Source of the DNA: Paramoeba atlantica
Lineage: Eukaryota; Protista; Discosea
NCBI GenBank assembly: GCA_977017575.1
Contig: CDRNVI010000014.1
Coordinates: 124,001-188,000 of the forward strand
DNA length: 64,000 nucleotides
Reading direction: 5' to 3'
Every line of letters starts with the position of its first letter. Position 1 is the stretch's first letter. The notes under the pieces are model-generated. The model saw nothing but the letters and a program-made list of their open reading frames with translations. It did not search any database and was not told the DNA's origin. The position numbers were made by a program, and so were the translations under genes. This document shows positions 1-62,966 of this stretch, one piece after another.

Positions 1-337
1 ACTATGTCTGGGCTCCTCCAATGGTAAAAAAATGTGATTCGTGGCTGTCCATTTTAGCTTACATGTACAGTCCCCACCAATACAGTCCTCTCCCTCATGT
101 TATTGCCCATCGCATTTTTATTCGTGGAAATTTGGACAAGTTGAAGCCCATTAAAAGTCATTCTGCATCGATAAAAGGATAAACAGAAGCAAATTTAGCT
201 TTTCGTATATGAATCCTAGCTCTACTTCGAAGCTACTCTCCTTCAATACTAGTTCTATACTGGTACAATGAATTAAACTTAATTTCTTTCTTCAATATCT
301 TAAGACTTTCTTACATAACTTCGCCAGTTTTAATGTT

Positions 338-865
338 CATGCGCTCGTCATGGCGCCGAGATACAGCCCTTGATGCGACAGCCGATATCATCGGCACAAT
401 CCGTAATGACGGATGTCGCACCAAGGGGGTTTAGCTCGGACTCTGTCGGTAGAGGTGGTCCAGGTAACTCGCCCTCTCTTTACGCAGCCGGAGGGGCGCA
501 CTGCAACCGACTCGGTCCCAGTCGGTAGAGGTGGTCCAGGCAACTCGCCACCTCTTTACGCAGCCGGAGGGGTGCACTGCAACCGACCACTGCCTCGCGA
601 TAAGACGAGGCAGAGCCACGCCCAGTGGTGCTCAAGGGAGGCCACCATGGCGCATGGCTCCCCGGGAAGGAAAGGGCGCGAAAGGAAGAAATCCGGGGAG
701 GGAAGAAAACTCACTCAAAGAGTGAGCCGGGGAGGGGTGATGGGGTGGAAGTGCGTCGCCTACTTCGCCGAGAAAGAGGGACAGTTTCGGCCTTAGTGCG
801 GGCCGGCAACGGGCATATAACAGTAAGACTATGCTCGTTGCCGAGGAAAGAAAAGATGAACTAAA
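338..865. repeat. Structured dispersed non-coding element, copy 1 (homolog at 30215-30811)
   Basis: Shares with copy 2 the 5' motif CAT(G/A)CGCTCGT..GGCGC.GAGATAC, a three-way junction at 374-420, and about 250 bp of 3' sequence (620-865 vs 30548-30795) including a 14-bp hairpin at 804-843. Confidence 0.85.
445..587. repeat. Two 67-bp tandem units (period 76 bp), each closed by GTCGGT/ACCGAC
   Basis: 445-511 and 521-587 differ at 4 positions; internal stems AGAGGTGG/CCACCTCT and GCAG/CTGC. Confidence 0.9.
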
Positions 866-1092
866 GGAAAATGTACCAACAAGGTACAGAAACTGTATCT
901 TTGTAAGATGAATATACTTAAAGGTGAATATACTTGAAGAATATACTTGAAGATGAATGCAATGAGTCTGTAAGTTCTCCAAGATTCTTAGCATGACATC
1001 ATCGGCGTTCCTCTTCAAACCAGCATTCCCCGAAGCACCATACTTTCCGTTTACGTTTTGGTGCACCACCACTTTGCGACAATGAGTTTCAT

Positions 1093-1289
1093 CCTAGCCT
1101 CACTGCGTCTCCGACTCCCGTCCTATGTGAAGTGCCAGCCGTGGGTTGCTACGGCGGGCTCGCCCGCCGGTCCGCAAGGACCGACCGTACGCATCGGAGT
1201 AACATCCGAGCCGTCGAGCCCCCTCGCGTGGACGGTAGAGGATCCATAGCCTGTCAAGGCCAAATGGGTGCAAAATTAGATTAGATTAG
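1093..1289 (+). mobile_element. SINE-like or 5'-truncated non-LTR retroposon with (TTAGA)n tail
   Basis: 11-bp direct repeat ATGAGTTTCAT at 1082-1092 and 1290-1300; TTAGA x3 tail; GC-rich hairpins inside, including GGTCC-GCAA-GGACC. Confidence 0.8.
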
Positions 1290-1870: not shown

Positions 1871-2543
1871 ATTGCGGTGGTTGTATAACTACCGCTCTAC
1901 CCTCGATTATTGAAAAAAAGTGAACAAAAACAGTGAAAATATAAAGAGGAACACAGTAATATAATAGAAGAAAAATATATAAAAGGGGCTCACGTGGTCC
2001 AAAAATTTTCAAAAAAATTCGGACCCTTAGGGGGGGCATATCTTAGGGGGGGCATATATAATTCGGTCCAGGGGGGGGCATACCGCACGATTTTTTTTTG
2101 AAAAAATTATTTTTCGAAATAAAAGCGCAGAAGGGGTAGCCGGGGTATTGGAGCGCATTTTCCACCCCCCTACTCGGGGGTGTCCCCCCCTTGTATCCGC
2201 AGGACGGGTCCGACAAGTTCGGACCTTTTTTTTCCGGATTTTTTCGGATTTTGTTTTTTGAAAAAGTTTTCAACTTGAAAAAGATTCCAAAATTTTTCGC
2301 CTACTGTATTTTGATAGTTTGGGACTTATTCTCGCTTTCTACGCCATTGTTTTCGCGAGATGTCGCTTCGTGAAGCCGTGGTACTTTTTTGACTAAAAAA
2401 TGCGAAAAGTAATTTTCGGGCCCAAAGGGGTCTTTTTGGGTCGGAAGAATGGCGTGGTTGTAGTCGTATAGGTAGTTTTCAACGCGAAGCGCGCAGCATG
2501 AGTGACTTCTACGTTGAAAACAACCACCGCGTTTAACGAAGAG
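1871..2543 (+). mobile_element. Family A asymmetric non-autonomous element, copy 1
   Basis: Starts ATTGCGGTGGTTGTA with an end hairpin; G-run core; ends in a partial 95-bp palindrome. Homologous to 50401-51346, 54392-55005 and 48995-49490. Confidence 0.8.
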
Positions 2544-2705
2544 ATAAAATACTGTGATCCCCACATTTTGAGTAACCTTATGCCCCACCAGCCGTCTCAG
2601 CCGCCGTTACAGAGTCTCTTTTTCCTCGAAGGATAACAGACGACTGCTTTCCTGGATCAACACAAAATCTTCCATTACAATCAACACCGTGTCGAATTCG
2701 ATAGA

Positions 2706-3121
2706 TTGGTGTACGGGCTTATTTGGAATGCGGAGTGCATTCGTTGGAAAATTGATGAACCCAAATATTATCGCGATACACTAGAAAAAATTCCACTTGA
2801 TCATTCCGTTGTACAGGAATGGAAAAGACGGCCCATGTGTCATTGCACATTTCACAAGTACGACAGGGAAGACGCAGCGAATATAGGAGAATATCGCGAG
2901 GAAGTAAAGCATATTCTCAAGACGATTGGGGTCACCCGCATTGGGAAGTGCTCCGCACATGGGAAAAAAATCAGAAGACGTATAATAAATTAACAAGGAG
3001 TGAACTGAAGTCTAAGGCGGCTTCGCAGAAAGCTGCTCATGCAGAAGGTCTGAAAAAAAGGCAGGATAATAGAAAGAAGCGAAACAGAAGCATATTAAAA
3101 CGTTTTAAAAAGAATAGTTAA
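2706..3121 (+). pseudogene. C-terminal remnant of a PIF/Harbinger-type (DDE_Tnp_4-like) transposase
   Basis: LIWNAEC and RPMCHCTF match LMWNAEC and RPMGRTCNCRF of the 51376-52404 ORF. Confidence 0.6.
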
Positions 3122-3279
3122 TTACTTCTCACAGATTTACTACTATCCTAATTTTGCGGTCTTGAGCTGAAATCTTACTCACCCCTTCAAAATCTAGTAA
3201 ATAATCTAGTAAATAAGTACAGACTCCATAGGTTTTCACTGAGAGCGCCCGGGAGCGCCTGGGAAGGTTTCAAGCCTCC

Positions 3280-3470
3280 CAGGCTTGAAAGTGGACGAGG
3301 GAAATGGACCAATAGTGTAGGTGCGGCAGTTTCCCACAGGAAAAACGGTATATCCACCCTTTTAGGCACCTGTCTCCATGTCATAAGGGAGATACCATTT
3401 TTCCAGTGGGAAACTGCCGCATCTACTATTGGTATCTACTATTGGTATCTCCCTCGTCTACTTTAGCCTG
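3280..3470. repeat. Foldback/MITE-like long inverted repeat
   Basis: About 50-bp arms (CAGGCT..AAAGTGGACGAGGGA...GCGGCAGTTTCCCAC and its reverse complement); 13-bp tandem duplication in the right arm; no TSD found. Confidence 0.65.
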
Positions 3471-4377
3471 AAAAAAGCATGTTGAAAAAGTGAGCTGATG
3501 AAAAAAGGCGAATAGAAATTTGTAAATCGCTTCCGAAGAAGGGGGTCTCGAGTCTTCCAAAAGTTTATTTTTCTTTTTTAAAAATATCAGTTTATGTTGC
3601 CTTTGATTCTTTGCGGAAATTGTTTTTCCGGAAAATGTCTTGTCGGGCGAAATTCGATTAGGAATATAGGGTAGCGAGGAAGTAGTATCTCCCTCAATAG
3701 GATAATGCTTTACCAATGTGTAAGTTGAGTCCGGGTAAAAAAGTCCTAGCTGCGACATATCCATTCAAATTATTCGGCATAGAAAGGGAACGGACAATCG
3801 TGACTGATGATTTTCTTAACCCAGAACCTGCTTGTGAATATGCGCTTCTGGAAGGGGCATCTCTGGTCAATGCACACACGGACGTGCACGATGGAATGCG
3901 GAACGCAATAACATTCAGTACATTATAATGCATTGAGTGACATTTTTCCGCTACTTAGGAGCCTACCACATTGTGACTTGCGTTACCCGATGTGATGTTG
4001 CGGAGCCGTATTGTATACGGCGGCCTTTCTTGAATGCATTGTTCGACTTATGACTTAATTTCTATAAAAGTAGAAAAGAAAGGGATTTGCAATGCTTCAT
4101 CGCGCAAAAAGAAACGGTGGCACAAAAACGAAATATTTCAAAAGAAAATGTAACCTATTCTTCGTCTTTTAGACAGAGTATACGCTGACTGATGTATTGA
4201 TAGAATTACTGTTACACTCCCCGATGTATCTTCGTTAAAAAAATCTGTTCTCCGCCGTTTAAGTGAAGCCCGCTTTTTGCAAAAGGTGCGCTTAAAAGGG
4301 GGAGTCTGAATCACTACATAAAAAATATCAGCGATCATCGAAATTTGTACTGTATTGAAATTTCTTTTTACCTAGTA

Positions 4378-4986
4378 CTGTACCCCCCCTAGTTATCAGT
4401 CGCTACTTTTCGAGAAAAGGTGACAGATAACTAGGGGGGGTAGGGGTGCGACAGATAACTAGGGGGGTCAAAGTGCGACAGATATCTAGGGGGGTCCGTC
4501 ACCAAAAAAGCGAGGGAACGAAATGTTACAGAAACGGTATCTTTATTGCCTAGGAAGATTCCTTTCTACCCCAGTGGGGTACTGTAAGCTGAAGACATGC
4601 GTCTACGGGTTAAAAGAAGCCCAGGGAGTGAAGCGGATGATGAAGGGAATGCTGAAGGGGATGATGGAGTGGATAACGAAGGGGACAATGATGGGGATGA
4701 GGAGGGGGGCGATGGAGATGATGAAGCTAACGAGCTCCGACTCCTGCTTTCCAATTTCTATGGTAGAACTCCACGCAAGACTATTTGCCTAAAAACAGAA
4801 CAGAAAAAGACATAGAAGTTTCGCTCATACTTAACTTTTTAACTTCTTCATTTTTTTTGAAAAAAAGCGACAGATAACTAGGGGGCGTGGTCGACGAAAA
4901 AAATATTCGAAGTGCCGAAAAGCGACAGGGGGGGGGAGGTAAATAGGGGGGGGTGGGGGCGTGACAGATAACCAGGGGTGGTACAG
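4378..4986. mobile_element. pogo/Tc1-type non-autonomous element
   Basis: TIRs CTGTACCCCCCCTAGTTATC / GATAACCAGGGGTGGTACAG, TA on both sides, repeated GACAGATAACTAGGGGG subterminal motifs and an acidic residual ORF (4597-4815). Confidence 0.8.
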
Positions 4987-5190
4987 TACTTACTTACTAC
5001 TTACACTATACTGTACTTGCGAGTATACTTATTTTATAGCAATATTTCTTCAGTGTTCTTAACTTCCACCGATGCACTTGCTGAATGATCACTTCCTACC
5101 TCATGAACACTTCGCCCGGATACGCAATCAAATAATTCATATTATTTTACAAAATATAAGAAGGTTGAAAGCCTACTACGAGAAACGTAG

Positions 5191-6159
5191 TCACGTTAAC
5201 TGTCCATCGCTTTCGGATTTATGTGAAATTTTCGTCTTTTTGAGTGCGTAGCTTTCTGGGGTATATCTGGTTACAGAACTGTCCATTTCATGACGGCTTC
5301 TGGAATCCCCTTTTTCGTAGATCACAGCCTCAATGGCGTTGCCCTTCAGAAGAATGTATTTTTCATCTAAACCTGACGCTGTTAAGTCCACATCTCCCTC
5401 GAGTTCATTATTCAAAACATCAAGACTTTCTAGCCTTGAGGGAAGTGAAGAGACATCCAGTTTCCCTTCAAATTTGTTATGTCCGAGGGAAAGCCAGTGC
5501 ATTGCAGACGGAAGGTGTACAAGATCAAGCGTACCTCTTAATTGATTAAAATTCAACCAAAGCTGACGCATTGTTGCAGGTAATGCTGAAAGGTCTATCG
5601 TGCCATCAAATAAATTGCGGTCAGCACGAATTTGTTCCATATTAGGAGGTAGCTGAGTGAGATCGACGGGACCCTCCAATCGGTTCGTTGATAGAATGAG
5701 AGTTTCCATCGGTGCTGGAAGTGTTGTGAATCCGAATACTCCGTGATGGCGATGCGCTTCAACATTAAAGTACACCATTTGGGCGGTCAAATCGGTGGAG
5801 GATAATGCCCCTTCCAGTTTTGTCGGGTCCCTGAACATATCACGTTGCACGTTAACCTCTACTACATGTGGAGGCAGAAATTGCCATGTGAGATTTCCAG
5901 AGAGACCCAAACGCTTCCACTGAAGGTGTGTGACTTGTGACTCACGGTTACACTTCACTGCTTTCCAAGAACATGCGGAAGCTCGCTTTTTCCATGTTGG
6001 AGGCTGGCCCTCGACATATTGGATGAGCCGACGCATCATGTCAGTTTCGGACATTGTAACCGAGCTAACTTTGCTACCGAATTTTCGTCGCTTTTGCGGA
6101 GGTGGCTGCGGAGAATCGTCTACTGCAAAAATAGAACAAACCAGTATCAGATTGAACAT
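5191..6159 (-). CDS. Leucine-rich repeat protein, 322 aa
   Basis: CSWKAVKC cap and repeated LxxLxLxxNxFxGxLDLxxLP units. Confidence 0.9.
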   Translation of the reverse strand: MFNLILVCSIFAVDDSPQPPPQKRRKFGSKVSSVTMSETDMMRRLIQYVEGQPPTWKKRASACSWKAVKCNRESQVTHLQWKRLGLSGNLTWQFLPPHVVEVNVQRDMFRDPTKLEGALSSTDLTAQMVYFNVEAHRHHGVFGFTTLPAPMETLILSTNRLEGPVDLTQLPPNMEQIRADRNLFDGTIDLSALPATMRQLWLNFNQLRGTLDLVHLPSAMHWLSLGHNKFEGKLDVSSLPSRLESLDVLNNELEGDVDLTASGLDEKYILLKGNAIEAVIYEKGDSRSRHEMDSSVTRYTPESYALKKTKISHKSESDGQLT

Positions 6160-6480
6160 TGTAGTTGCATATAAAAAAAGGATTGTTTTATAGCTGTTGA
6201 AATACCATTCGAACTAGTAGGTAGTTTATTGAGAAAGCGTGACATTAGTTTTCTCCTTCAAAGTATGTGATCATGCGTACAATGAAGGCCATACAATGAA
6301 GTATGGAAGAAACTCTTCCTCGAACTCCAGAACTAAAAAACTCCTAGAAAAAAAACACGGTGTTTGCCATGTACACACCCTGGGGTAAGTGGCTTGTAAG
6401 TTACGTCTTACAACTAAAAAGAGCATATAAGCATGTATGTCGTAATTTTCACTTAAGAAAACAATTTCGGAGATCAGTTC

Positions 6481-6658
6481 AGCTCGGGTTTGATTGACTT
6501 TATTCGACTTTGATTGAGAGTTTCGTTCCGTTAATGACAGTGGTAGCGGGGAAATGTATACGACACTTACATAGCTCGGGTTTGATTGACTTTATTCGAC
6601 TTTGATTGCCAGTTTCGTTCCGTTAATGACAGTGATAGCGGGGAAATATATGCGACAG
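6481..6658. repeat. 92-bp-period tandem duplication at the truncated 3' end of a Tc1 copy
   Basis: AGCTCGGGTTTGATTGACTTTATTCGACTTTGATTG... at 6481 and 6573. Confidence 0.9.
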
Positions 6659-7188
6659 ATACTACTACGTTTCAGATACTTTTTTTTAACAATCGAATGG
6701 GTGGGGGCGTTGTCCATTTGAAGGATGGCCTTCCGGTGCGAACGAAAAAAACTTGCCATGCCACTCTCGTCGTAAGCCAACAAAATCTGTTCGGAGTTAA
6801 CAGAGGCACGCTGTTCTCTCTCGAAGATGAAGAAGAACAGACCAAAGTTAAAGGAATACCCCATCCACACCATTATCCCCTTCCCCCCAAAATGTTTTCC
6901 CCGCCGGTCCGATTGCCTCAGACGAGGTGCTTGCGTGCGACCGACGTAAAAGTCGGCGTTTGACCCCGCACAGCAACTGAACAGTTTTTCATCGGTAAAA
7001 ACAATGTTCAGGTAGTCAGCGTCACTCCACTTAAGCATGTCGTTCACACTCTTAAGACGGAGTTGTATGTGACGCGGTTTGAGACCAAGGTCTTTGGCCT
7101 TGCGAAGGCGTCCATAGCCCTTAAAAATAAGAGCCCTCCGGACACTACTCAGGGAGCCTCCGTGCTCGCTTCGCACCTCGTGATGCAC
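6592..7188 (-). pseudogene. Truncated Tc1/IS630-like transposase
   Basis: IVFTDEKLF, FGGKGIMVWMG and MDNAPTH motifs; the third catalytic motif is lost. Related to 21652-22161 and 14605-15688. Confidence 0.85.
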
Positions 7189-7846
7189 AACGGAGAACGT
7201 AGGACAACCCTACACGGTATCCTGCGACAGTCTCCGGCACGCAGAAACTCATGCGTTCATGTACCTTTCTGTAAGGACCGTACGCACCCCCTCTCGAGGT
7301 GGAGTACTGACGTGTGTGTGATCCTCATACTTCCGCACCCAATACTTTACAGTCCTGAGGGCAGTTTATGGAGTTTTGCGACTGCCTTATAGTACTTAAG
7401 TCGCTCGTAATCGATTACGAGTGCCGTACGCATCTCGGGGCGCACGCGGGAGGAAGGTAAACACAGGAGGCGGTGCCTCTTCGTCATGAATCACCAAAAA
7501 AACTGTTAATTTTGAAAAAAATCTACTCTGTAAAAAACATCGGTCTTTTTGCACTTTTTTTAAGTTTAGGCATGATACAGGTATCCACGAGTGAAAAGGA
7601 TGTCCTGAATGTCGATGAAATCGACATTTTTTTGGATACAATATACAGTAAGTTAACATTGCCCGTAAAGTTTAGTTTCTCGTTTTAAATGTACGAATAA
7701 CCATGTGAGTCGTAGAGTAGGTTCCACTGTTAATTTTTTATACGGTCATCGGTAACTGTCGTAAAGCACAAAAAACAGGACGACGCTTAATGCCCCTTAC
7801 CAGTTACTAAAAAGAGAAACAAAGACTTGCGAATTCCATGCCCTTC

Positions 7847-8458
7847 TCACTCTAATTTGATTTCAGGTGGACACTTTCCTATCCAAGGGGTGAGATGTAA
7901 TTTGTTTCCAGAAAGGTTCAAGCGCTGTACCACACGGGGCAAGGCGGAGAGATCGACACTTCCCGTAAATTGATTCTGTGACAAATCAAGGGCGAGTAAT
8001 TTTGCAGGAAGAGCTGTAAGCACAACATTACCCTCAAACTGGTTGGCACGTAAGTGCAAGCATTCCATAGCCTGAGGCAGTGAAGTCAGATCCAGCACTC
8101 CGTAGTGACGGTTCTCGTCTATCTCGAAAACACGAAGACGATAAGGAAGCTCGCACAACGATAAAGTGCCACACAATCTTTGACGAAAAGCACGAAATAC
8201 TCGAAGTGAGTATGGTAAGTAGCGCCACATAAAACTGCCCTGCAACTCCGGACTTTGGTAAGAGTATACTCCGTTGTGCCCCCAGTCTAGGACGGAAATT
8301 TGCTGCTCATGATTGCACGAAACATGCTTCCATCGACACGCTGGAGTATTCGCGTTCCAGGTTGATTCTTTGTACGTCACATTCTCAAGCAGTTGCATCA
8401 AAACATATTCTTGAGGAATCACCACACTGTGCACTTTTCCGGCACGTGAAACATCCAT
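7847..8458 (-). CDS. Leucine-rich repeat protein, 203 aa
   Basis: RAGKV..PQEY leader, CRWKHVSC cap, LRR units. Confidence 0.9.
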   Translation of the reverse strand: MDVSRAGKVHSVVIPQEYVLMQLLENVTYKESTWNANTPACRWKHVSCNHEQQISVLDWGHNGVYSYQSPELQGSFMWRYLPYSLRVFRAFRQRLCGTLSLCELPYRLRVFEIDENRHYGVLDLTSLPQAMECLHLRANQFEGNVVLTALPAKLLALDLSQNQFTGSVDLSALPRVVQRLNLSGNKLHLTPWIGKCPPEIKLE

Positions 8459-8825
8459 TTAGAACCGCGTATTGAAGATTTCGTTTGAAAGATAAGAACT
8501 GTAATATTCAAAATCAGCACGACATAAGTAAGATAAGCTTCAATATTTGTCGCCAAAAATTATAGAAATGTAAGGAGAAAGAATACTGTATAACCGTACA
8601 ATGGATACTACGCAATCCGTCAGTGCTAATCCGTGTGAGTTCATGATAGCCGGTCAGTCAGTGTCAGTCAGAAAATTCGTTTTTGAGTACCGACTTTGCT
8701 TTTAAAGAAAAATTTCTTCTGAAGAGAGAAAAATGTGTTGCTTTCTTTTACAGAAAAAGCAACACATGTACATAAATAAATTTATACTGTATGTATCGTA
8801 CCATAAGTACATGTACATGCACGTA

Positions 8826-9467
8826 TCATAGGAAAACGAAAGACGGAATAACTGATGCTATGTGAATATAATTTGATCTCAAATCGAGAGTAGTTAATGT
8901 AGCAGGAAGTTTCGAAAGGTTTACTTCACCTTCAAAACAGTTCCTCTGTAAGCACAAAATTATTAGCTCTTGGGGCAATGATGTAAGATCCAGTGCACCG
9001 GAAAATCGATTCCCATCGAGACTCAAACACGTCAACTTCTGCGGAAGCACCGTCAAGTCCACGGAACCGTAAAGGGCACAATTTGTGATAAAAATAGAAT
9101 ACAAACTAGGCGCGAGGTCTGCGATGGACAATACGCCGCTGATCCCCTTTAGTTCGCCCACAGCAAGGTGCAATGTCGTATCAGGCATGTACCTCCACGT
9201 AAATGTCCCGTAATATTCATCCTTCTCGCCGGTCAAAAATGAAATTATTGGTGATACTCCTAATTCTATGCGATTAACATTTCCATTCGTATCACACTGT
9301 ATGCCTTTCCATTCACAGGCGGTTGTGTTCGTCGTCCACGAGCAATGAGGGTTCGAAATGTTTGCAAAAAATCGCTCTAAATTATACTCCTGGGGAACCA
9401 ATATGCGCCCTACTTTGGCAGAACGTGAAACTGTGTCAGAAGTACGTAAAAAGGCACGTGAGATCAT
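8826..9467 (-). CDS. Leucine-rich repeat protein (ORF open to 9506; start at 9467 preferred)
   Basis: PQEYNL leader, CEWKGIQC cap, LRR units. Confidence 0.85.
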   Translation of the reverse strand: MISRAFLRTSDTVSRSAKVGRILVPQEYNLERFFANISNPHCSWTTNTTACEWKGIQCDTNGNVNRIELGVSPIISFLTGEKDEYYGTFTWRYMPDTTLHLAVGELKGISGVLSIADLAPSLYSIFITNCALYGSVDLTVLPQKLTCLSLDGNRFSGALDLTSLPQELIILCLQRNCFEGEVNLSKLPATLTTLDLRSNYIHIASVIPSFVFL

Positions 9468-9896
9468 CGTATTTTGCTTTGCATGTTTTCTAAAAAATAG
9501 TTGCACAAAAAGAGCTTTCGGAGAACTTTATTTTATTCTGCATGTCTAGGTTAAGATAAATTCTTAATCCCCTTATCCAAAGATTTTCTCAGACTTCCAA
9601 TTCAATATTTTGCCAATAAGAAGATAGAGTACAAGGACAATGTACAGATTAGCGTGTCCATTATACACGTTACGTAGATGCGAACATTCTAAACGCTTCG
9701 AGCTGTTCTTCTATAGTCTCTGGTAAAATTTTTTGTTTATAAAAGCATTTTAGTTTACATAGCACTTTTAAAATGCTAATGTACAATAGGCTAATGTACA
9801 TTAGTTGGCGAATTAGAAAAAGTGGAGGTGCAAAGGTAATAAAAAAGAGAGACTTTGTTTCTACCCTGTGTGCAACTTTGTGCGTTCGGTTGTGGT

Positions 9897-10532
9897 TCAG
9901 GACCGGTAGGCACGGAATGCCCCACCATTGAGTACCTTAATTTTCGTCGCACCAACGTGGTAACCAAGGATAGACGGCAATTTGAAAATATCCAGTTCAC
10001 CATACAGATTTTGGTTCAAATTTAACACCAAATGAGACAAAGTGGATGGAAGTTTATGAAAGGTCACTTCGCCTTCAAAACAATTCTCGCTTAAAATAAT
10101 CCTTTCTAAACTTTGCGGTAAAACTTATAGGTCGATTTTTCCTGAAAAATTATTATTTTGTAATAAAAAATGCACGAGACTGGATGAGAGACTTCCCCAA
10201 GATACGGCTCCGCAGAGTCTGTTTGGTTCTACTCCAAACTCAACTAATGTTGATGGAAAATGCTCCCACCCCAGAGTGTTGCGTAGTCCGCGAAATGCCC
10301 ACCAAATTCGCACCACTTGGCCATGCTCATCACAAGTGACACCTTCCCACTCGTGAGCGGGTTTCTTCGTGTCCCATGAGTGGTGCTTTTCTGCGAGGTT
10401 CTGAGTCAGTAGTGCTAATTCATACTCTGGAGGGCGTTCTGCTTTCAATCGACCCAGACGAGAAGGAACTTTGATTTCATCCGAGGCTCCTACATACATG
10501 TATAATAATAAATTCAGGTTTGGGCGCGACAT
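9897..10532 (-). pseudogene. LRR gene with one in-frame TAA at 10125-10127
   Basis: Translation continues in frame after KIDL* as VLPQSLERIILSENCFEGEV... to TGA at 9897-9899. Confidence 0.85.
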
Positions 10533-11161
10533 TTACAACAAGAAAATCAATTTGTTTTGTGAGATAATTTATTATTAAACGAATGTTCAAAGGACGACGT
10601 TCCGAAAAAAAAGAATCATTGAAAAGAAGTATTCTGCCGAATGATGTTCCGAAAAGAAGCATTTTATTCGTCATTATTTTCTTAGAGTTTTTTAAGAACA
10701 TGATAGCTGCTACGCTGGACGTCTATATTTCTACAATAGAATTTTAAGAATTTACAGTGGTTCTTATAAATTCCGAATATCCTGAATTCGGTCCGGCAGA
10801 GTGCACCGCCATATCGGCCTGCAAATCACGATTTTTGGTGCTGCTTTACGATCCACCACAACGTAACACGGAATAACCTTACGGACATCGGGAGATAGAA
10901 ACTAACACAACCCTGTAGATGTCCTTCTTCTCGCAAGACATGTGAAACCTCTCCAGGAAGAGCACCCACCATTCCATCGGACAAGTACTGTATACACTCT
11001 CTATCCATTTTCCCATGAAATTTCCAACCCTCAATTTCACGTATCCCCTCCTTTCTTTCACTCCCCACCAATCTTCCCTCCTCTCTCCAAACCCTACCCC
11101 CCCATATGGTTGGTATGATTACCCAACACACACCGCAGCCTACCCTACCACACCCTATACT

Positions 11162-11750: not shown

Positions 11751-12274
11751 GTTTGGAGTTACCGGTAGGGGTAGGAGGAAGATCTGACGTAAAAAACGTC
11801 GTAGAATGGTAGATGAGGTCCCAAATTTTCAGAATAGTTTTTCTGAAATTGCCGGTGGAGCGCGCGGGTCGCCAAAAAATATAATTCTGTCCCAGGGCTA
11901 CCGCTCACAATTGGGCCTTGCTCGCAGACGTGGGCTTCGCTCACAGTTGGGCCTTGCCTCCAGACACATAAACTAGGTGTCGCAGTATAGGAAAATAAAT
12001 ACAGAATTAAGAATATAATTTATAACTAGCATCGTCACCCCACACACGAAAACAGCTTTTGTATGAATGTTGTTAGGACCAGGACGAGGTTACGAACTTA
12101 CTTCCCCATTACGGGGTCGTGTCCAACATTCGAACCTTTTTACAGAAACGGTATCTTTATCGTTTGAGTAGCTTTCCTACTCCTGTGCCTCCTTCTAAAT
12201 GACTGTTATTTGTGTAACATGAACCTACAAAAAAATAAAGCACAAGAGAAGAACAATGTCAACTGAATAAAATA

Positions 12275-12525: not shown

Positions 12526-13017
12526 TCAAGCGACTCTCTTGCCACTGAAGCAGAGATTTGATGGATACTGTCCTCCCCCACCTGTAATTGTTACAGGTCG
12601 ACCGCTCAATGAAAGTTCTCCAGTAAATTCATTTTCAGAAAGATTCAAAGTTCTCAATTCTCGCGGAAGCGCGCCGAGGTCTACAGTTCCATTCTCTAGT
12701 CCACAGAAGAAGAAGAAGTCGACAGAGGTGGATCGGAAAATCACCAAAATCGACTTCCCCGTGCATGCGACAGAACCGATCCATAATAACCATTACAGTA
12801 TTCGGAAGGAATCTATAATTCAAGAAACCACCATGGTGATACGAACTCCAGTCTACGGTACCAACTTTTTTTGTTCATTGCACCAAATTCCGTGCCACCG
12901 ACAAAGAGGTGTCTCGGAGTTCCACGATGAATGAGGTTGTGTAACATTCTCAACTACACGGGAAAAGACGAGCTAGGGAGGAAGATTGTAAGTATTGCTT
13001 CGTGCAGGAGTATCCAT
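12526..13017 (-). pseudogene. Degenerate LRR gene (stop plus frameshifts)
   Basis: MDTPARSNTYNLPP*LVFSRVVENVTQPHSSWNSETPLCRWHGIWC, then LRR fragments in other frames (GTVDLGALPRELRTLNLSENEFTGEL). Confidence 0.8.
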
Positions 13018-13185
13018 GAGAATAGTACGTATGAAAAAGCTCAAATAATTCGGATTATTTATGAAAAAAGTCCATTGTAGGTAAGCAGGTAGCGTAATGT
13101 AGAACCATGTGGTATATTCGTGACAAAGAAACATTTTTCCTGCAACATCTAACATTGTAAACATGTGTTCTTATTTCTTTTTCAT

Positions 13186-14136
13186 TTAATCAATTTGTAT
13201 TTGTGATTTCGTCTCGTCGCTACCAGTCTGACCCTCTTCTCGACATTGTTCGCGCAGTTCCTGGGCTTTTTTCACGTACGGGAATTTCTCTTCCTCTGTC
13301 ATGACTCTCCACCGCGCTCCTAACTCCTTCGCGATCTGTGAGACTTTCCATCCTGGATGCTCTTTCATCAGCAAAGGACGTGCTTCGCCGGTAAACACAA
13401 AATACGCCGAGAGTGGGCGTTTTTTCGTGATTACCGATTTCACGTTTCCAGTGGTTGACCCAACTGAACCAGGAGGGTTCGTTTTATTTGCCGATACAAC
13501 ACTGCTTGTCCCCTTCGTGCTTACCTTTGGGCTGGATGCTCCAGAAAGCCTAGACCGAATCAGTGGCACCCAGTCCGCAAATCCAGTCGCTTTCAACGCG
13601 GCCTCGATGTCTTGTCGTTGCAAGACATGGCGGGAGGGCAAGTAGTGATCCTCGGGTAGGTTTTCGAGCTCGGACTGTGTCATCAGGAGCCGCGGGTCGA
13701 CGACCGCCTCCGAGGCCGTAGAGGTGAGCATCATAAGAAACAGTTGCGCAATCTTGTGTATCCCCACACGAGCCTCCCGAGACAAGGCGTACCCGGGAGG
13801 GAGGGCTTGCGTCATGTAGGGGACGGAAACAGAGAGGGGAAAGGGAGAGAAGAGGGATGAGGGTGCGTTTGTTGTGTCAGCTGGTGGGGTCTGAGGCTGT
13901 ACATCGCTTTTAGTGCCGAATAAGGAGGTCTCGATATTATGGGTTGAACTTTGAATGGTTTGTAGTTCTTCGTCGAGAATAATGGGGACTGACGGGGCTG
14001 CATGGGGGGAAGAGAGAAAATTCGGCTCCGCACGACGCGTTGTGGAAAGCGTATCGTTTTCATGAACCTCCGGAGCTGAATCAAATGAAACGGAACTGCT
14101 TTGACTGTGCTCCGCGGAAGAGGATTCATCAATCAT
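13186..14136 (-). CDS. NF-YB/DPB4-like histone-fold plus C-terminal HMG-box protein, 316 aa
   Basis: QALPPGYALSREAR..LFLMMLTSTASE..LQRQDIEAALKATGF (histone fold) and KRPLSAYFVF..IAKELGARWRVMTEEEKFPY (HMG box). Confidence 0.8.
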   Translation of the reverse strand: MIDESSSAEHSQSSSVSFDSAPEVHENDTLSTTRRAEPNFLSSPHAAPSVPIILDEELQTIQSSTHNIETSLFGTKSDVQPQTPPADTTNAPSSLFSPFPLSVSVPYMTQALPPGYALSREARVGIHKIAQLFLMMLTSTASEAVVDPRLLMTQSELENLPEDHYLPSRHVLQRQDIEAALKATGFADWVPLIRSRLSGASSPKVSTKGTSSVVSANKTNPPGSVGSTTGNVKSVITKKRPLSAYFVFTGEARPLLMKEHPGWKVSQIAKELGARWRVMTEEEKFPYVKKAQELREQCREEGQTGSDETKSQIQID

Positions 14137-14352
14137 GAGCCTGACTATAAACCCCTGTCATACGTAGAAGTGCTGTCGAGATTTAAACAAACGGAAACTA
14201 TATTTTTTTAGTGAAGTATTCTATCAGTAGGCCGTTTTATCTGCTGTAATCTAATTAGCAACTGCGATTATTGTAGTTATTGTCTAACTACCGGTCTACC
14301 TTCGATTATTGAAAAAACGTGAACAAAAACAAAAAACAAATAAAGAGGAATA

Positions 14353-15925
14353 CAGGGGGGGGCACGAAAACTGACAGGGTCCGCATTTTAGCGTCCTGAG
14401 GCAGTTTGAGCTGATTTTTGTTGCAAACGAGAGATCTCGTTCTGAATATCGTGTCTACGCTATTTAAAATACAAAAACGTTCGCCGGAAAACATTTCCAA
14501 TGAGTTACAAAAGTGAAATTTTAAAGATTTTGCAAATTGAAAAACGGGTCTAAGATTCGTAATTTTTACGTACCACGGCCCAAAAAGTACCCAGAAAGTA
14601 GGTCTTAATAGCCAGTATTCCCACCTCCACGCTCACGTAGTATAGCGAGGCGCGTGGGAAGACTCTTTAGCGTATTCACATACGCCTCGTGACATTCGTT
14701 CAACAAATATTCCTTGGCCTTTGGAATAGCCGCTTGTAATTCTTTTCGATTCTGTGGACGGAGATGGCTGTGGATGTACTTATCCATCATGCTCCACAAA
14801 TTCTCAATCAAATTGAGATCAGGAGATTTCGAAGCCAATCAATAATTTTGATGTCTTCCAACTTACCTATTCTCCTGGCTTCCCCATGCCCTGGCGCGTT
14901 GTCAAGGACAATTGTAGCCCCGGGGCGGTGATGCATCCAGTCGAAAAACCCATTTCGTTTTTTCATTGCATTCAAAAAGACCTCATTTGTAACAGTTTCA
15001 TTTGGTGCGAACTCATGGAAACACGCATCAGGCACTTCCCAACGGAGACAGGTGGCCATGAATACATGAACTCCTTTCCCCCCATACCACCTGTCTAATT
15101 GTACTGGTGTTTCCTTGGGGGGGTCAGTCATTTTTGCAAGGTACGTAATTTTTTACCATGTGATCCGCATCGAAAGATTTTTTCGTCGCACCACACAATA
15201 CGAGACAGCTGATCTGGGCTGAATCCCTCAAAGTAATCAGCAAGTTGTAGTCTAGCAGCTTTGTGCTCAGCTGTTAAAAAAGGCTTGTGCGACATCGTCT
15301 TAATGACGTATCCCATCTTTTTCAAACTCCGTTTCACGGTGTTTAGACTACGTGGATAAAGTACTTTATCCACTCTCTTATGTACCCATTTAAACCCCGG
15401 ACACCCGAATTGTGTGTCTCGCTCAGCATCAACAATAGCACAGAGCATGGCTCGGAACTCCTCCGTATCAACGCCGTTATCGCGCGAGTAGGGTGCACGT
15501 GCCACGTCACCTGACTCATCGAAACGCGCTTTGTACCGAGAGACAGAGCTCTCTGAACAGTTCATCATACGTGCCGTATCCGGAATAGATGTCCCACGGT
15601 GTCTTTCGTGTGCGCAGACAATGCGCACAGGATATGAACACTGTTCTGGTGATAGCTGGCGACGGTTTAGTCTATTCCGTTGACCCATAGTAAGGTAAAA
15701 AGAAGAAAAAATAGCTTTTTTTTACGTTTTTCGATACTTTTTGCAAAATATTTTGCCCAAAATTTCAATATTTTGTAAATATTTTTTTTGATTAGCAGAA
15801 ACGGGCTCCAAATAGCGTAGACACGATATTCAGAACGAGATCTCTCGTTTGCAACAAAAAGCAGCTCAAACGGCCCTAGGACGCTAAAATGCGGACCTTG
15901 TCAGTTTTCGTGCCCCCCCCCCCTG
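14353..15925 (-). mobile_element. Full-length Tc1/mariner element with about 110-bp TIRs and a twice-frameshifted transposase (15688 to 14605)
   Basis: TA-CAGGGGGGGGCACGAAAACTGACA...TGTCAGTTTTCGTGCCCCCCCCCCCTG-TA; WCDEK, LDNAPGH and SPDLNLIEN motifs lie in three ORF pieces. Inserted into a Family A end (about 14268-14350). Confidence 0.92.
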
Positions 15926-16155
15926 TATAGTAATAAATTTATAATTTACAGTCAAAGTGCTTATTAACAATAATAATAGTTAACGGAATATTTTCACAGT
16001 CCGCTCTTTGTGCTCATGCACGTGTATGTGAACACCGTACATTACCACATAAGGATCGCTCTATCAAATTAACTGTAACGTGGGGTTGGTTATGCCACGA
16101 GATAGTTCCCCAACTCCTTTGCACAAAGTCTGGATCACTATCCTCGTCACTGACC

Positions 16156-16746
16156 TTGCTAAAAAAATATGATTCATTCAGAGCTCAGGTGCCATCGGAG
16201 GATGTTGGTAATGTACTTCCAAACAATGTCCGTACTCTCTATTGCGACATGCACAGATTGAAAGAGCATGTTTTGGGTGGTATTCGTAGTTCTGTCGATG
16301 AATACGATCTTTCCGGTATGGCCATTGATGCGGGAATCATTCGATTGCATCATGAGCATGTTCTTATTGCAGTCTTGTATATAGGCCCCCATAAATGGCT
16401 AATGCCACCAATGTACCACCCAAAGTTTGGATCTTTCAGCTGTAAAGATACTGCCGAAATTGTAGTCAGAGAACTAAAGAGGTGTCTGCAAGGAGCACGT
16501 TTTTCCAAACTAGCGTATCTGGTGGTAGATGGGTGTGCAGTGAATCACGTAGCACTTCTGAGGCGTCTAGTAGGAGGAAGATTCCTAAAACTAGACTCGC
16601 CGTGTCATCCTGTGCCATTTTTTGCCATCCACAGAGAGGGTAAACTTGCAGTGTCCATCGAAAGGATGAAGGGAACTCATGATAAAGTTTCAATGATTTC
16701 AATAAATGAAAATATTAGAAATTTACAAAGCGGCACTATACAGTAA
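16156..16746 (+). pseudogene. Possible hAT-like transposase fragment
   Basis: TAEIVVRELKRCL..KLAYLVVDGCAVN resembles the hAT RNase-H second-Asp region; weak. Confidence 0.35.
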
Positions 16747-16957
16747 GTGGGGGGGGAGTACACCGCGGTACTATAAGTGGGGGCGGCACAGTAAGTTTAT
16801 TCGAATGATATTTATTCCGTTAATAAGTACTTTGACGGTCATAGAAGATAGTACACTGCCGACTAATATTTTTACCATTTTTATTTAATAAAGCGCAAAC
16901 TGGTCGAGTATCACGCACATCTTTGTCACACTTGTTGTCTTCCTCGATCAGCGGAAG

Positions 16958-17428
16958 TTGGCGGAGCATAAGCTCGTCCACGAGCAGGCCGCTGTCCCCG
17001 CGACCGCCGCCCACCTTCTCAAGGAACACCGACGGGGGGCATCAGATATCAAGGACCTCCAGTGGGCCTCAGCCTCCGAACTACACAACGCGTGGCTCCG
17101 TGAACTCCGGCGCTTCGCCTTACTAAACAGGACCCCAACAACCCCGGTGAGTGGGCACACTGACGTAGACTCTACGCCGCCCCCTATGGCAGACGCTCCT
17201 CGACTTCGCCACCAGTCGGGGGGAGCGCACGGCCCACCGGGGACGCCTCCCCTCCCCATCCCCTCCCCTCCGGAACTCTACGAGTTCCCTCGCATGGACG
17301 TCAGGGTGTTCGACGGAACCACCCACGGCTCATGCATCAACACAAACCTCCCCCTCCCCGAAAATATTCCCTTCTTCCTTTGGCACACGCTGGCTCTGGC
17401 CCACGATTTCGCATGCCCATGTATGTAA
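16958..17428 (+). other. Unassigned ORF between transposon ends, probably a mobile-element fragment
   Basis: 156-aa GC-rich ORF on the strand opposite the host genes; no family recognised. Confidence 0.2.
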
Positions 17429-17989
17429 GATTGATTGACACAATAATACTTCCTGTGGCATACTTCAAGAGTTACATACAAAACGATTTCAAAGAATATG
17501 ATTGTTGTCGCTGATCGTATTCCTTTTAATCTTCGATACTTCTTCTTACTCTACTTTGCGCCAATATGGAAACTAGTTAAGAAATATGAATGTACAATGC
17601 CCGTCGCCAAACGTTCATTCCTATAAATCAAAAATTCCCTTGTACTTCTAGTACTAAACGGGTTCTCTGTTTGATTTGCAAACCGCGGGTTTCGGTACAC
17701 ACCCACCCGCGGCCCCTCAATAATAAGCACTAAAATTGCTTCATTATTTTGAAAAAGAAACAGTGTGGATCAGAGGAGATCTCTAGAGATCGATGAAGAT
17801 AATTCTTGAACGCCCAAAGGGACTACCTGCAGACTCTTCATTTCAACAGCGGCGAAAATCTGTACAAAAATTCGTACCAAAAAAAAAAATCGCGCCGCTT
17901 TGCGGCGTTGTTCTTCTGAACGATGCGTCAAAATTGCGCTTAAGTGGGTCAAACGGTTGCGCATAAGTAGGGGGGACAGTAATTATAAC

Positions 17990-18820
17990 ACAGTGCCCCC
18001 CCACTTATTTGTCGTAGTCCCACCCCCCAATTAATTGTCCTTTTTGACGAGACTGGGCAGGAGGCGCCGCGAAGCGGCGCCGGAAGTTTTTTTAGGGGGG
18101 GGGGGGCAATTTTTCCCTACCAACCTGCGCTGTTTTATGGCCAAAGGAATATCGCGGCGTGTGTTTTGGCGTCTCCCGGACGTGGCTCTGCAATTCAGTT
18201 CAACTTTTGCTCGAAGAGGGCCTTTCAAAGGGACCATTCCTTCATTTTCATCATCCGAATCAGAACTGTTGCTCGCAGAACCGGAGTCTTCAGAAGAGCT
18301 ATCGTTCAAGGATTCTTCACTGGAAGAATTCGAGTTGCTTTCAATAATCCCGACCCCCCATTCACGACGCTCCTGGCGAAGCTTCTCTATTTCGAGATAA
18401 AACAATTTTTCCTCAAATCCAGGAATCTCAGAGCTTTTTTGCATGAACAGGGATAATTTTTCGTAAAAATTCTCAAAGGTGAAATAATAAGAAAAACGGA
18501 ATAATAAGTGTGCTGGGGGTTTACTGTGTACTTCTCTTTATATTTTCACTATTTTTGTTCACTTGTTTTTCAATAATCGAGGGTAGAGCGGTAGTTATAC
18601 AACCACCGCAATAAACTAATTACTAGTACGGGAAAGGCAGAAAAACTACTCATACAATAATACCGTTTCTGTAAAGCCAACTTTATCCGAACGCTTTGGA
18701 GATTTCTAAAATAATGAAAAAAGTTTGGGAACTTTGTTTCACCTAACCAAATAAATTAAGCCCCCCACTTAATTGTCCTTTTTTTGAGAAAGTGGTGACA
18801 AATAAGTGGGGGCGGCACAG
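17990..18820 (-). mobile_element. pogo-type deletion derivative with nested Family A end (about 18520-18612)
   Basis: Inverted ends GTGCCCCCCCACTTATTTGTC / GACAAATAAGTGGGGGCGGCACAG-TA; acidic C-terminal ORF 18031-18444. Confidence 0.6.
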
Positions 18821-19342
18821 TACCTTTCTAGGTCCGTCGGGTCCGGACCCAAGTGGGTCCATAGGGACGGGTCCGGACTCGGGTCCTCGGACCCACGGAC
18901 CCATTCTTTTATGTTAATTTGTAACAACGCTGGGTTTAGTTCCGAGCAATTATGTGGTTTGATGGTGGTGGGCGGCGGGGAGGGTGGATGGAGAGGAACA
19001 TTTACCGATATCGCATTGACATAAATGGAAAATGGAGAATAAATAAAATTATTTATAATTATTTATAATCAGCGCGATCTCATAAAGACGTCTAGTAGAG
19101 TAGTAAACGAGTTGAATATCTCTTCTAAATGATATGTAGAATCACGACTTTCGCGCTATATTAAACTAATTTGAAAGGTAATATCATAAATCATGTCATG
19201 TAAATTTTTCTGCACGTACCCAGAGAAACAACCATTGAATTTATTACTATAACATCTGCTAATACTATTGCCACCCTACTAACGAACGGGAAAAATCTTT
19301 TACAGCCACCAAAACTTTTGACTATGGAAATATTGGATTAGC

Positions 19343-19478
19343 CTTGCGGCCCGAGCAGGCGTCGAGTGCCGTCTGGGAAGGGGGTAGCAAGACAATGAAG
19401 GTCGGTGACCTGAGACTCTACCCTAACGGTTGGCGCTGCAGAGCCCTCCGTGTCTTCTTCTTCTTCTTCTTCTTCTTC
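19343..19478 (+). mobile_element. 136-bp SINE-like insert with (TTC)n tail
   Basis: 12-bp direct repeat TATTGGATTAGC at 19331-19342 and 19479-19490; about 8 TTC units at the 3' end. Confidence 0.85.
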
Positions 19479-19567
19479 TATTGGATTAGCGTCCTATATA
19501 AGAAAATATATAAATAATTTTCTTTTGTTGTTGTTTACTACAGGGGTTTCACTGCAGGGGAACTTTC

Positions 19568-20032
19568 GGTCAAAGTGAAGCATTATTGCGCCTTTTTTGA
19601 AAAAAAGTAAAGTTTTTTTAATTTTCTATTTTTCGACCGCTACTACTTATTTCTTATGGTTTCGCTTCCAGAAAGCCGAGTCTGCAAACTAATTTGAGGT
19701 CTTCACACAGTCGTCTTAATGGGTGCCCCTCGCTATTTCCAGTCTTCAGACGACCATTCACAACTTCTCCGCTGAACTTTATCCGATCTTCCCTTTCTTC
19801 ATCAAAGCACCCAAGGGTCCCATTCCCACGGGAACGTACTTCTTTCTTGAGCATCCCGTTCATGCGTTCAACAGTGTTGGTGTGTACACCAGTGTTGGGG
19901 TCCACCCAAAATCGTCGATGATTTACTGTCTCATGCCGCAAGTCGTTTCCCAGGGAGCGACTCGCTCGCCAGCAATCAGTGCGCGCCACGGCCCGGCTCC
20001 CAGCAGACAACTCAATGACTTGTGTATTCACC
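19568..20032 (-). mobile_element. Merlin (IS1016/ISXO2-like) truncated element
   Basis: TIR GGTCAAAGTGAAGCATTATTGCGCC; 8-bp direct repeat GAACTTTC at 19560-19567 and 20033-20040; ORF motifs TDCWRA, HETVNH and VDPNTGVHTNTVE. Confidence 0.88.
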
Positions 20033-20479
20033 GAACTTTCAATAGAAACTCTAAAGTGTTGTGAAACAATGCATGCACGACATTTGTGAACGTTGTAACT
20101 GCCTATTGTTCTAGAAATGTGTTGAAATGTGTTTTAGAAATGTTGAAACTAAATATTTTCTTCAAAAATGAATAAAAAAATAAATGACAAAAAATTACCA
20201 GTTTTTGAATTTTAGGGTACATTTTTGCCGGAATACTGCCTGATATTATATACGAGCCGATGACTATCACATATTCAAATAGAATACAATAAGGCGAAGC
20301 TCTAAATTAGCCTTGCTAACGTTGGTTTATAAAAACCAGAGAAAGATATTTCAGATACGAGAGAGAAATACAAATTGTAATATAATTATTAATGATGCGC
20401 AAGTTAGGGATTTTACATGTTTTTTCACGATGTTTTTGCACTTTTTTATGAATAGTTTGGGATTTTTTCTCACCTTTTG

Positions 20480-21097
20480 TTAAAAGAACTCCATTTTCTT
20501 TTTGATTACTCCATTACTCGCTGATATTCTTGTGTCTTCAACATTGTAGTACAAATTCTTCAGTGCGCCATCTACATCCAAGTAACCTTCCAATTTTTCG
20601 TTAAAATTCAAATATAATTCCCTCAAGGTTAGCGGGAGAGAAGAAAAATCTGCATAGCCTTCAAATCTGTTGTTACTGATTGACAAGTATTCTAGCCTGG
20701 GCGGGAGAGTACACAGGTTTGGGGTGCCCGTAAATTGGTTGTTAAATAAAGCAATCGTTTGCAATGTTGGAGGCAATTCTTCGAAAGGAAAATTTCCCGA
20801 AAGTTCATTTTTATGAAGATGTAGAGTCACCAATGTCCTGGGCAAATATTTCACATTCAGTTCACCACGAAGTTTTAAACACGACCACCGCAGAGTGATT
20901 ATAGTACCAAATAGATCGCATGCAATATAACCCCATTCACACGCTGGTGTATTCGTACTCCAGGTGGAGGGATGGTTTTCCACATTTTGTATGAGTCGTA
21001 TTAAATTATATTCCACTGGTAGTGAAGCTCCGGTAACCTTACCCGGACGTACAGTCGGTTGTGTGTCCGATGAATGGAGTGTAAGTAGTGGAGGCAT
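20480..21097 (-). CDS. Leucine-rich repeat protein, 205 aa (subfamily with 31316 and 29882/30691)
   Basis: GKVTGASLPVEY leader, CEWGYIAC cap, 4 LRRs. Confidence 0.92.
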   Translation of the reverse strand: MPPLLTLHSSDTQPTVRPGKVTGASLPVEYNLIRLIQNVENHPSTWSTNTPACEWGYIACDLFGTIITLRWSCLKLRGELNVKYLPRTLVTLHLHKNELSGNFPFEELPPTLQTIALFNNQFTGTPNLCTLPPRLEYLSISNNRFEGYADFSSLPLTLRELYLNFNEKLEGYLDVDGALKNLYYNVEDTRISASNGVIKKKMEFF

Positions 21098-21612
21098 AAA
21101 AATGCTTAGTATTTTATGAGACTTTTTAATACCAGAATGAGGTTAGTATTCGATATGTTTTCCAAATTACGGGAAAAAAACGTTCGAAGTACATGCTCGA
21201 AGACCTAAGAAGTACATCAAAAGGAGGGAAAACACATATAAACACGCTTGCTGCAAACGCCGTATAGTAGAAGTGAAGACCCCGGGAAACATTGAGAGCT
21301 TTGGAATCACTTTAATTAAAAATGCGTGCATTCTCCAACACGAGCGCGTGTCCTACAAAAGTTTGTCAGCGCGAATACGACGCACATCAAAAGCCGAATT
21401 TGAGAAACAAATGTTTCTCAAGTATGGCGGAAATAAGCGTCGACATGCCGTGTGCAATCACTGTGGTATCGTATTCGATGGGCACTACGCACAAATTTAC
21501 TGAGCGCGTATAACGTCAAAATGCAAAATCCTGCATCCAAAAGGAGCAAAGCCTTGCGCTATTGGCCTTACGCTATTAGCCTTACGCGATAAAATTGTTT
21601 TCGTTTTGGATA

Positions 21613-22376
21613 CAGTGGGTGGCACTTGAACCTGGGGGGGTCTAAAAAATTTTGTTGCAAGGCATCGGCGAAGCTAACTTACTGGAGGGTATCATGGTTT
21701 GGATGGGGGTAAGCCTGACACACGGATTCTTCTTTCACGTTTTCCGCTCTCATCATCCAGATGGCCCGAAGTTCACTGTCAACGGTGATGCCTTCCTTGA
21801 TGCCATGCAAAAGAGGGGAGGTTTCTTTCAGTACTTGCGGAGGCACCGCGCGTATGAAGCGATGGACAACGCCCCTGTTCATAACAAGGCACGTGCCAAA
21901 GCCCAAGAGAAAGGGTATACCTGGTTGCAATGGCCAGCGAAGTCCCCGGATCTAAATCCGATTGAGAACCTTTGGTCCATTATGGATGCGACAAAGGACA
22001 ACATTCACCCTCGAAATCGAATTCAATTGCTCGATGCCATCCACGTTGCGTTTCGTAAATTGGAAAACGAGCAAAAGACTGATTGCCTAAACACGCTTCG
22101 TAGCTTTCGAAAGCGTTGTTCCATCTTTGTCCAGAGAAATGGCAAGCACTATGGGTATTAGTGGGCTTTTTTTTAAGGTTAATTGAGTAAAATTAATTAA
22201 AATTTGTAAGTGACAAATCTCATTTGGGAGCCATCTGACGATCTCTACCCCGTGTTCTAATAGTTTTTTGTACTAAGACATGTAACTCTGAGAGAGCTCT
22301 CGAATGCGCTATTATTTTCCAAAATTGGATAGTGTTTCAAATTTTAGACCCCCCCAGGTGCAAGTGCCACCCCCTG
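21613..22376 (+). mobile_element. Internally deleted Tc1/mariner element with C-terminal transposase (21652-22161)
   Basis: About 40-bp TIRs CAGTGGGTGGCACTTGAACCTGGGGGGGTCTAAAA, TA flanks; MDNAPVH and WPAKSPDLNPIENLW motifs. Confidence 0.9.
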
Positions 22377-31089: not shown

Positions 31090-31315
31090 AAAAAGTGTTG
31101 GGTGATATGCAGTATAAATGTAGGTTGAAAGCCGATGTCTGAAAATACATTAGAACAAGTATGTTTACAGTATTTGAAAAAGAATTAATGCCTCAGAAAC
31201 GTGTACGATCGCGAACCTCACGATTTCCCTTCCAGAGAGATGGTTATTCACCACCTGAGAAGGTAAAGCCGTCGCATCGCATGCTTCTCGTGGACCATTA
31301 CCTTCGTACATACGT

Positions 31316-62963: not shown

Positions 62964-62966
62964 TTA

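Follow-up and report, generated by a model that had tools for sequence, protein, structure and literature searches.

What class of element lies twice, without an open reading frame, in the window (the whole 64,000-nt stretch of Paramoeba atlantica DNA that was analysed)? A preliminary description, made from the letters alone, had proposed a mobile, non-coding element structured as RNA, of a class it could not name, and had suggested a partner of tyrosine-recombinase (YR) elements, an ssDNA element or a retrozyme. Our analysis supports the mobile, non-coding, structured RNA and allows the class to be named, as a spliced-leader (SL) head together with retroposon traits gives a SINE-like non-LTR retroposon. 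We consider it probable that the element is a non-autonomous retroposon of this kind from a Perkinsela-like kinetoplastid, spread as a trans-spliced, leader-paired RNA through the machinery of RLE-type LINEs.

Comparison of the window with itself gives two homologous blocks, 617-856 against 30548-30786 (81% identity) and 337-421 against 30226-30310 (74% identity), with middles that are unrelated in sequence. Neither copy has an ORF or TIR, and copy 2 disrupts an LRR gene of which both halves are open and two paralogs (20498-21102 and 31347-31944) are empty at the corresponding site; a two-copy mobile, non-coding element is thus confirmed. Its boundaries and strand had to be corrected. Copy 1, previously placed at 338-865, runs on to 902-904 and carries a short A-rich tail at 328-337, where no tail had been seen, and the outermost bases of the interval 30215-30811 assigned to copy 2 (30215-30225 and 30800-30811) are filler outside the element. 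The element lies on the minus strand, and the end given for it earlier fell 12 nt short of the SL head. The copies and their surroundings are laid out as follows, in coordinates of the window:

328-904, minus strand: copy 1, near full length, about 575 nt (from contig depth and a copy in other flanks in run X5)
328-366, minus strand: 3' end of copy 1, a small terminal hairpin and short A-rich tail (GAACATTAAAA in copy 1; GAACAACAAAG in other copies, from a loose end in run X3)
435-612, minus strand: variable cassette of copy 1, a 76-nt tandem duplication (435-510, 511-586) and a hairpin at 591-612
617-761, minus strand: conserved middle, with hairpins at 748-766 and 708-728, the repeated CCCTCCCCGG and a G+C-rich block at 617-660
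905-958, no strand: 5'-junction duplication outside the element, three tandem 13-16-nt units spanning the target site
29882-30214, minus strand: interrupted LRR gene, 3' half, open frame
30215-30225, no strand: 3'-junction filler of copy 2, a fold-back and a short repeat of the element end
30226-30799, minus strand: copy 2, second subfamily, without the tail and with the 5' end (SL head) shortened by about 33 nt
30317-30547, minus strand: variable cassette of copy 2, four degenerate repeats of 27-29 nt
30800-30811, no strand: 5'-junction filler of copy 2, an 11-nt copy of upstream target DNA at 30820-30830
30812-31094, minus strand: interrupted LRR gene, 5' half, open frame

At copy 2, where the insertion point falls within a codon, the reported absence of a TSD holds (one base was lost); at copy 1 a TSD is not definable. 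The target-spanning unit is tripled at the 5' junction of copy 1. CATCTT stands at the cut in both target sites, which, with two sites, is no proof of a preference. Both copies lie on the same strand as the neighbouring genes, and the flank of copy 1 gave no match as an LRR remnant. Elsewhere in the window, an LRR gene has been duplicated recently (45543-46419 and 56325-57191, 94% identity), and a look-up of one LRR protein of the window found no record.

When contigs of four public runs were aligned onto window positions 150-1150, the summed contig depth was 40-120 in the flanks and 2000-11000 over 320-900, and rose to 13000-22000 for the SL bin of runs X1 and X3. These values do not equal copy number but mark a high-copy family and its ends. 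In run X5, from a second study, a contig carries 327-900 in other flanks with only one 76-nt unit. The element thus belongs to a dispersed high-copy family. Runs X1 and X2 hold an empty site, with 320 joined to 958 via 25 letters, which probably represents a paralog, as the sequence near the site differs. In contigs of run X2, copy-2-type sequence is fused to the SL head, and because such loose contig ends join it to the same head, we read copy 2 as 5'-truncated. None of the public runs on record as RNA contains the element, exact patterns of the body have no match in JGI metagenomes or IMG/VR, and the SL pattern has none in viral and bacterial collections.

The preliminary description had placed three helices (P1, P2 and P3) of a junction at one end and a 14-bp hairpin at the other, and all four are present where it put them:

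367-427, minus strand: three-way junction (P1, P3, P2) near the RNA 3' end, copy 1
30253-30316, minus strand: three-way junction, copy 2
793-864, minus strand: 5-bp helix, pyrimidine tract and 14-bp hairpin (804-843) with the conserved loop TCTTACT, copy 1
30722-30794, minus strand: helix 30721-30727/30789-30795 around the 14-bp hairpin 30733-30774, copy 2

Covariation between the copies is likewise real, although it had been undercounted: instead of three double compensatory changes we found six firm ones, twice as many, distributed over P1 (four), P3 (one) and the 14-bp hairpin (one). P1 itself has 13 bp in both copies (367-379/415-427 and 30253-30265/30304-30316) and four double changes rather than one. 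An additional 5-bp helix (793-797/860-864 against 30722-30726/30790-30794) contributes two more after structure-guided realignment. On the minus strand, 50 of 50 cells of the three-way junction pair, as against 28-49% and zero double changes in slid controls; its shuffle test gave 17 of 500, with two sequences only, and the folding z-scores of the whole copies are -4.5 and -5.5. Loose contig ends show a third P3 loop on an unchanged stem, and the family variants at 818 and 829 fall in the loop of the hairpin, which is conserved as reported and reads TCTTACT on the sense strand. These models and comparisons support an element structured as RNA; it counts against our preferred reading that family variants avoid the helices weakly (8/36, p=0.3). 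The balance of G-U pairs, 6 to 1, is in favour of the minus strand (p=0.06) and contig variants are mixed, and the strand is assigned mainly because of the SL head. The sense loop (818-829; 30747-30760) has what we take to be a resemblance to the 5' end of U1 snRNA and, presumably, complementarity to the 5' splice-site consensus, both over seven bases only.

The head of copy 1 consists of the last 26-28 nt of a 38-nt spliced leader:

877-904, minus strand: spliced-leader relic, exon nt 13-38 exact at 877-902, nt 11-38 with one mismatch
872-888, minus strand: 6-bp hairpin across the exon end, with GTACA after the exon, against GTATG in the SL gene

The same sequence occurs in the exon of an SL RNA gene on a JGI contig (L011) and at 11 other SL-headed junctions. 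L011, which comes from a different sample and may represent a close relative rather than the host itself, carries a true SL RNA gene, in which the canonical start of an intron, GTATGAGAAGC, comes after the 38-nt exon, and, about 390 nt upstream on the opposite strand, a divergent 5S gene (L011 1-570). A tRNA-like sequence lies between these two genes, where ARAGORN calls no tRNA. Over the 25 intron nt of L011 that were compared, only the GTA directly after the exon is common to element and SL intron; as far as these sequences go, the intron of the true SL gene is separate from the body of the element. Four SL-like relics sharing one A-to-C change (GATACCGTTT) lie elsewhere in the window (4527-4550, 12141-12165, 18650-18673 and 29739-29760), of which that at 12141-12165 matches 24/25 exon bases; they possibly represent an older SL-bearing repeat.

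Could the copies then be dispersed SL-RNA-like genes, of the kind suggested for the 38+468-nt unit of Perkinsela, serving as leader donors or decayed from them, or else a different cellular RNA, in each case retroposed passively? An exon followed by a GT donor and a similar size would fit, as would the many exon-less and in-gene copies of Perkinsela. We nevertheless regard this as very unlikely, as the SL gene with the same exon has its canonical GTATGAGAAGC intron beside a 5S gene, whereas the element has an incomplete exon (26-28 of 38 nt, without nt 1-10) and an unrelated flank with no upstream promoter, its exchangeable cassettes and A-rich tail are traits of retroposons, and a segment complementary to the leader would sequester the exon. 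This segment, the anti-leader, is 27 nt long in both copies:

762-788, minus strand: anti-leader of copy 1, complementary to SL exon nt 2-26 (duplex -22.5 kcal/mol, 0 of 500 shuffles)
30693-30719, minus strand: anti-leader of copy 2, complementary to SL exon nt 2-26 (duplex -24.0 kcal/mol, 0 of 500 shuffles)

Shuffled duplexes had means near -8 and -9 kcal/mol, and, SL copies and SL-like relics aside, the two anti-leaders are the best matches in about 265 kb. No comparable segment occurs in 11 other SL-headed 5' regions (duplexes of -5.5 to -8.8 kcal/mol). The anti-leader faces nt 2-10, which the head in genomic DNA does not have, and with the core held fixed its reach into SL nt 1-10 gains about 10 kcal/mol (p=0.0007 for copy 1 and 0.004 for copy 2, the copies being related). 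Either an RNA with the whole leader, or pairing in trans with leaders, or an inverted relic of a full leader would account for this reach. Its part over nt 2-6 may derive from an SL copy in inverted orientation; the segment facing these bases doubles as a local hairpin with covariation of its own (752/762), which weakens a functional reading of the anti-leader. In the fold predicted with the full leader, this reach is used in copy 1 and unused in the copy-2 type. The stable part of the helix starts at nt 9-11, near the point where the heads start, which suggests that they may be trimmed back to the helix. We also considered action in trans, in which the anti-leader would serve as a toehold for an incoming SL RNA that displaces the relic and steers the trans-splicing of the element, or as a hook onto the leaders of LINE mRNAs that brings the element RNA beside new reverse transcriptase. 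We think such action unlikely, but if true it would mean a mobile RNA exploiting the host's universal mRNA tag through base pairing, and the reach is the part most worth an experiment on the use of the leader by base pairing.

Short, non-coding, dispersed and multicopy, the element has the general properties of SINEs and other non-autonomous non-LTR elements. Rfam searches with the whole window and both copies at E values up to 10 returned nothing credible, including no match to a Pol III RNA, and no pair of Pol III A and B boxes was found on the sense strand. A classical SINE with a tRNA, 7SL or 5S head was rejected for lack of A/B boxes and of a TSD at copy 2, and a CRE/SLACS retrotransposon for lack of an RT-RLE ORF, poly(A) or an insertion in an SL array. 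Passengers of ingi (NARTc, RIME, SIDER) were set aside, with no Pr77 hallmark or HDV-like ribozyme in Rfam and no HDV topology by manual inspection, as were hammerhead and HDV readings of the 5' domain, in which cores or topology are missing, and Helitron, MITE and YR readings, for which no fitting ends exist.

The candidates of the preliminary description fare no better. That a YR partner, an ssDNA element or a retrozyme is at work here is extremely unlikely in our view, even though copy 2 has no TSD, the copies fold strongly and the genome contains YR elements. Non-autonomous YR elements (VIPER/TATE, SIRE) have split direct or inverted repeats as their hallmark (PMC6681497), and the element has neither these nor identity to YR ends, nor, across 209 kb of retrieved loci, a resemblance to any YR element. 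Neither strand contains the hammerhead core CUGANGA and Rfam reports no ribozyme, which leaves the retrozyme unsupported. An RNA route with target-primed insertion is indicated by the SL head, the 5' truncation and the filler.

An RT fragment at the end of the window led to RLE-type LINEs of the same organism, of which one locus (L001) matches 55427-64000 at 98%. Our sample comprises 10 loci of ERZ24900291 and one of another sample, with two RLE groups and roughly 25 LINE ends. The SL exon stands at 11 junctions, with a length of 31-38 nt in 9 of them and mostly ahead of RT ORFs, and each time its last base is joined to a different sequence, the expected remnant of reverse-transcribed trans-spliced RNA, as with the relict leaders of dinoflagellates (PMC5585692). 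Element and LINEs thus have a head in common, this being the host's leader. A LINE with the body or 3' end of the element was not found in the 11 loci, which cover part of the LINE families, by BLAST, alignment or covariance model; the idea that the body is a UTR or LTR of a known autonomous element finds no support in these loci. A 13-nt match beside a LINE stop codon in L009/L010 was discarded as antisense and expected by chance, and a likeness between the post-exon pyrimidine tract and LINE 5' UTRs as not significant (best p=0.04 of 12).

The same loci offer several observations of their own. Pyrimidine tracts after the exon that end in CCAG or CCGG, similar to a second acceptor, are present in the element (845-871 of the window) and in many of the LINEs, for instance in L006 (8421-8450), L007 (3277-3306) and L008 (21620-21650). 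At 7480-7530 of L008 the last 10 nt of a full SL exon are repeated behind it, the pattern that a template slip, or re-splicing at a TG within an older relic, would leave. In L010 (690-13900), three full-length LINEs (1361, 1317 and 1290 aa) are arranged head to tail, with the SL exon at the head of every one, and a common structured-looking 3' UTR module of about 230 nt, unrelated to the element, follows several diverged LINE ORFs in L006 (12320-12620), L007, L008, L010 and L012. At 63346-64000 of the window and 9245-10400 of L001, a TATE-like N-terminal piece shares its frame with the thumb region of a CRE-like LINE that is truncated at its 5' end and that, in the other assembly, continues, decayed, through its C-terminal part. 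The window also contains a DDE_Tnp_4 ORF, several ORFs of Tc1-like appearance on visual inspection and numerous families of short repeats (51376-52404, 53032-53850, 6592-7188, 15128-15688 and 21652-22161); according to PMC12278014, the elements reported from trypanosomatids are all of class I.

Taken as a whole, the element comprises a minus-strand SL head, an anti-leader, an exchangeable middle cassette, a conserved three-way junction and a short A-rich tail, and shows 5' truncation, the A-rich tail and junction filler as signs of target-primed insertion. We favour a retroposon because a true SL gene has an exon to which its head is identical, and this exon also heads RT-coding LINEs of the organism, because nothing after GTA is common to element and SL intron, because the anti-leader covers nt 2-10, which are absent from the DNA head, and because its 5' truncation and filler, and the duplicated target DNA at the 5' junction, recall the junctions of R2, where duplications and extra bases are known (PMC2718515); some R2-group elements also insert without a TSD (PMC3636483). 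The supporting autonomous partner would most likely be the SL-headed RLE elements of the same genome. In the mechanism that we propose, polycistronic Pol II transcription would read through a coding-strand copy, as suggested by the orientation of both copies along their neighbours and the lack of Pol III boxes. Trans-splicing would add the full 38-nt leader at the end of the relic, which ends in TG, an acceptor often used by Perkinsela (26% of the time; PMC5601477). The leader would pair with the anti-leader and close a 5' domain, an RLE-type LINE protein would bind the 3' junction and the tail, and the cDNA would be inserted by target-primed reverse transcription, such that a new copy would usually retain only the part of the leader in the stable helix (from about nt 9-11 onward) or be truncated further.

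Directly after the exon the element has GTA, which it has in common with the SL gene but with none of the 11 other junctions, and this counts against a head renewed by trans-splicing. The same retroposon may instead have inherited its head from an SL RNA gene, as exon nt 11-38 with the first intron bases, through an ancestor at a CRE/SLACS site or a template switch onto SL RNA, and the 5' end of its RNA would then be set by cleavage or trimming rather than by new trans-splicing. We rate this as possible, though on the unlikely side. It would explain the 29-nt identity to the SL gene with donor GTA included, a change from GTATG to GTACA that retains the SL stem-loop while two G-U pairs become Watson-Crick, the absence of an initial G from the LINE junctions (0/11) and heads of 26-28 nt, against mostly 31-38 nt in LINEs; the 28-nt remainder also presumably fits the CRE/SLACS cut position. 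Stand-alone pieces of the exon plus 20 nt exist in Perkinsela (PMC5601477, note 1.3). However, the intron homology stops after 3-5 nt, the pairing over nt 2-10 would have no partner in cis in a fixed 28-nt head, no ribozyme match is available for the cleavage, and the head equals the host exon although the bodies have diverged by about 20%. A renewed and an inherited head are not told apart by these data.

In our literature search, whose coverage was incomplete, no report of an SL-headed SINE was found. The trans-spliced retroposon that we prefer would illustrate how an element with no promoter of its own can persist by means of polycistronic transcription and trans-splicing. It also suggests a new and testable interpretation for the 'SL gene' copies that are reported in their hundreds from the Perkinsela genome.

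Those copies are also the nearest published case. In Perkinsela sp., a 38-nt exon and a 468-nt unit have more than 500 dispersed matches, many of them exon-less and some inside protein genes (PMC5601477, Supplementary Note 1.3, Table S1.3.1), and the units were read as pseudogenes of the SL gene made by reverse transcription and linked to ingi-like elements (PMC5601477). Likened by description and not by sequence, the two share a 38-nt leader exon, a body of about 0.5 kb, dispersal and an LRR-rich genome; no structure or anti-leader is described for the Perkinsela units, and here the true SL gene is separate from the element. SINEU elements, with U1 or U2 snRNA heads (PMC4494074), are likewise short and non-coding, with a splicing-RNA head, a modular body and a dependence on LINEs that we infer for the element, whereas the head here is the SL exon only, has no internal Pol III boxes and is probably renewed by trans-splicing. 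The CRE clade (SLACS, CZAR, CRE1, CRE2; PMC12278014, PMC3636483) has in common with it the link between RLE and SL exon and an SL sequence at the 5' side, but its members are autonomous and sit in SL gene arrays with poly(A) and TSDs, whereas the element is non-coding and dispersed, lies in an LRR gene and has no TSD. NARTc, RIME and SIDER, the passengers of ingi and L1Tc, are also short non-autonomous kinetoplastid retroposons with a structured 5' end, from which the element differs in having no match to Pr77 or the HDV-like ribozyme, no poly(A) and no TSD. The relict-SL retrogenes of dinoflagellates (PMC5585692) are comparable in that SL relics in DNA are scars of reverse-transcribed trans-spliced RNA; they are protein genes, whereas the relic described here forms part of a folded, non-coding mobile RNA that also has an anti-leader. 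What is new here is the sequence antisense to SL nt 2-26 in both copies, together with a true SL gene whose intron is distinct from the body of the element.
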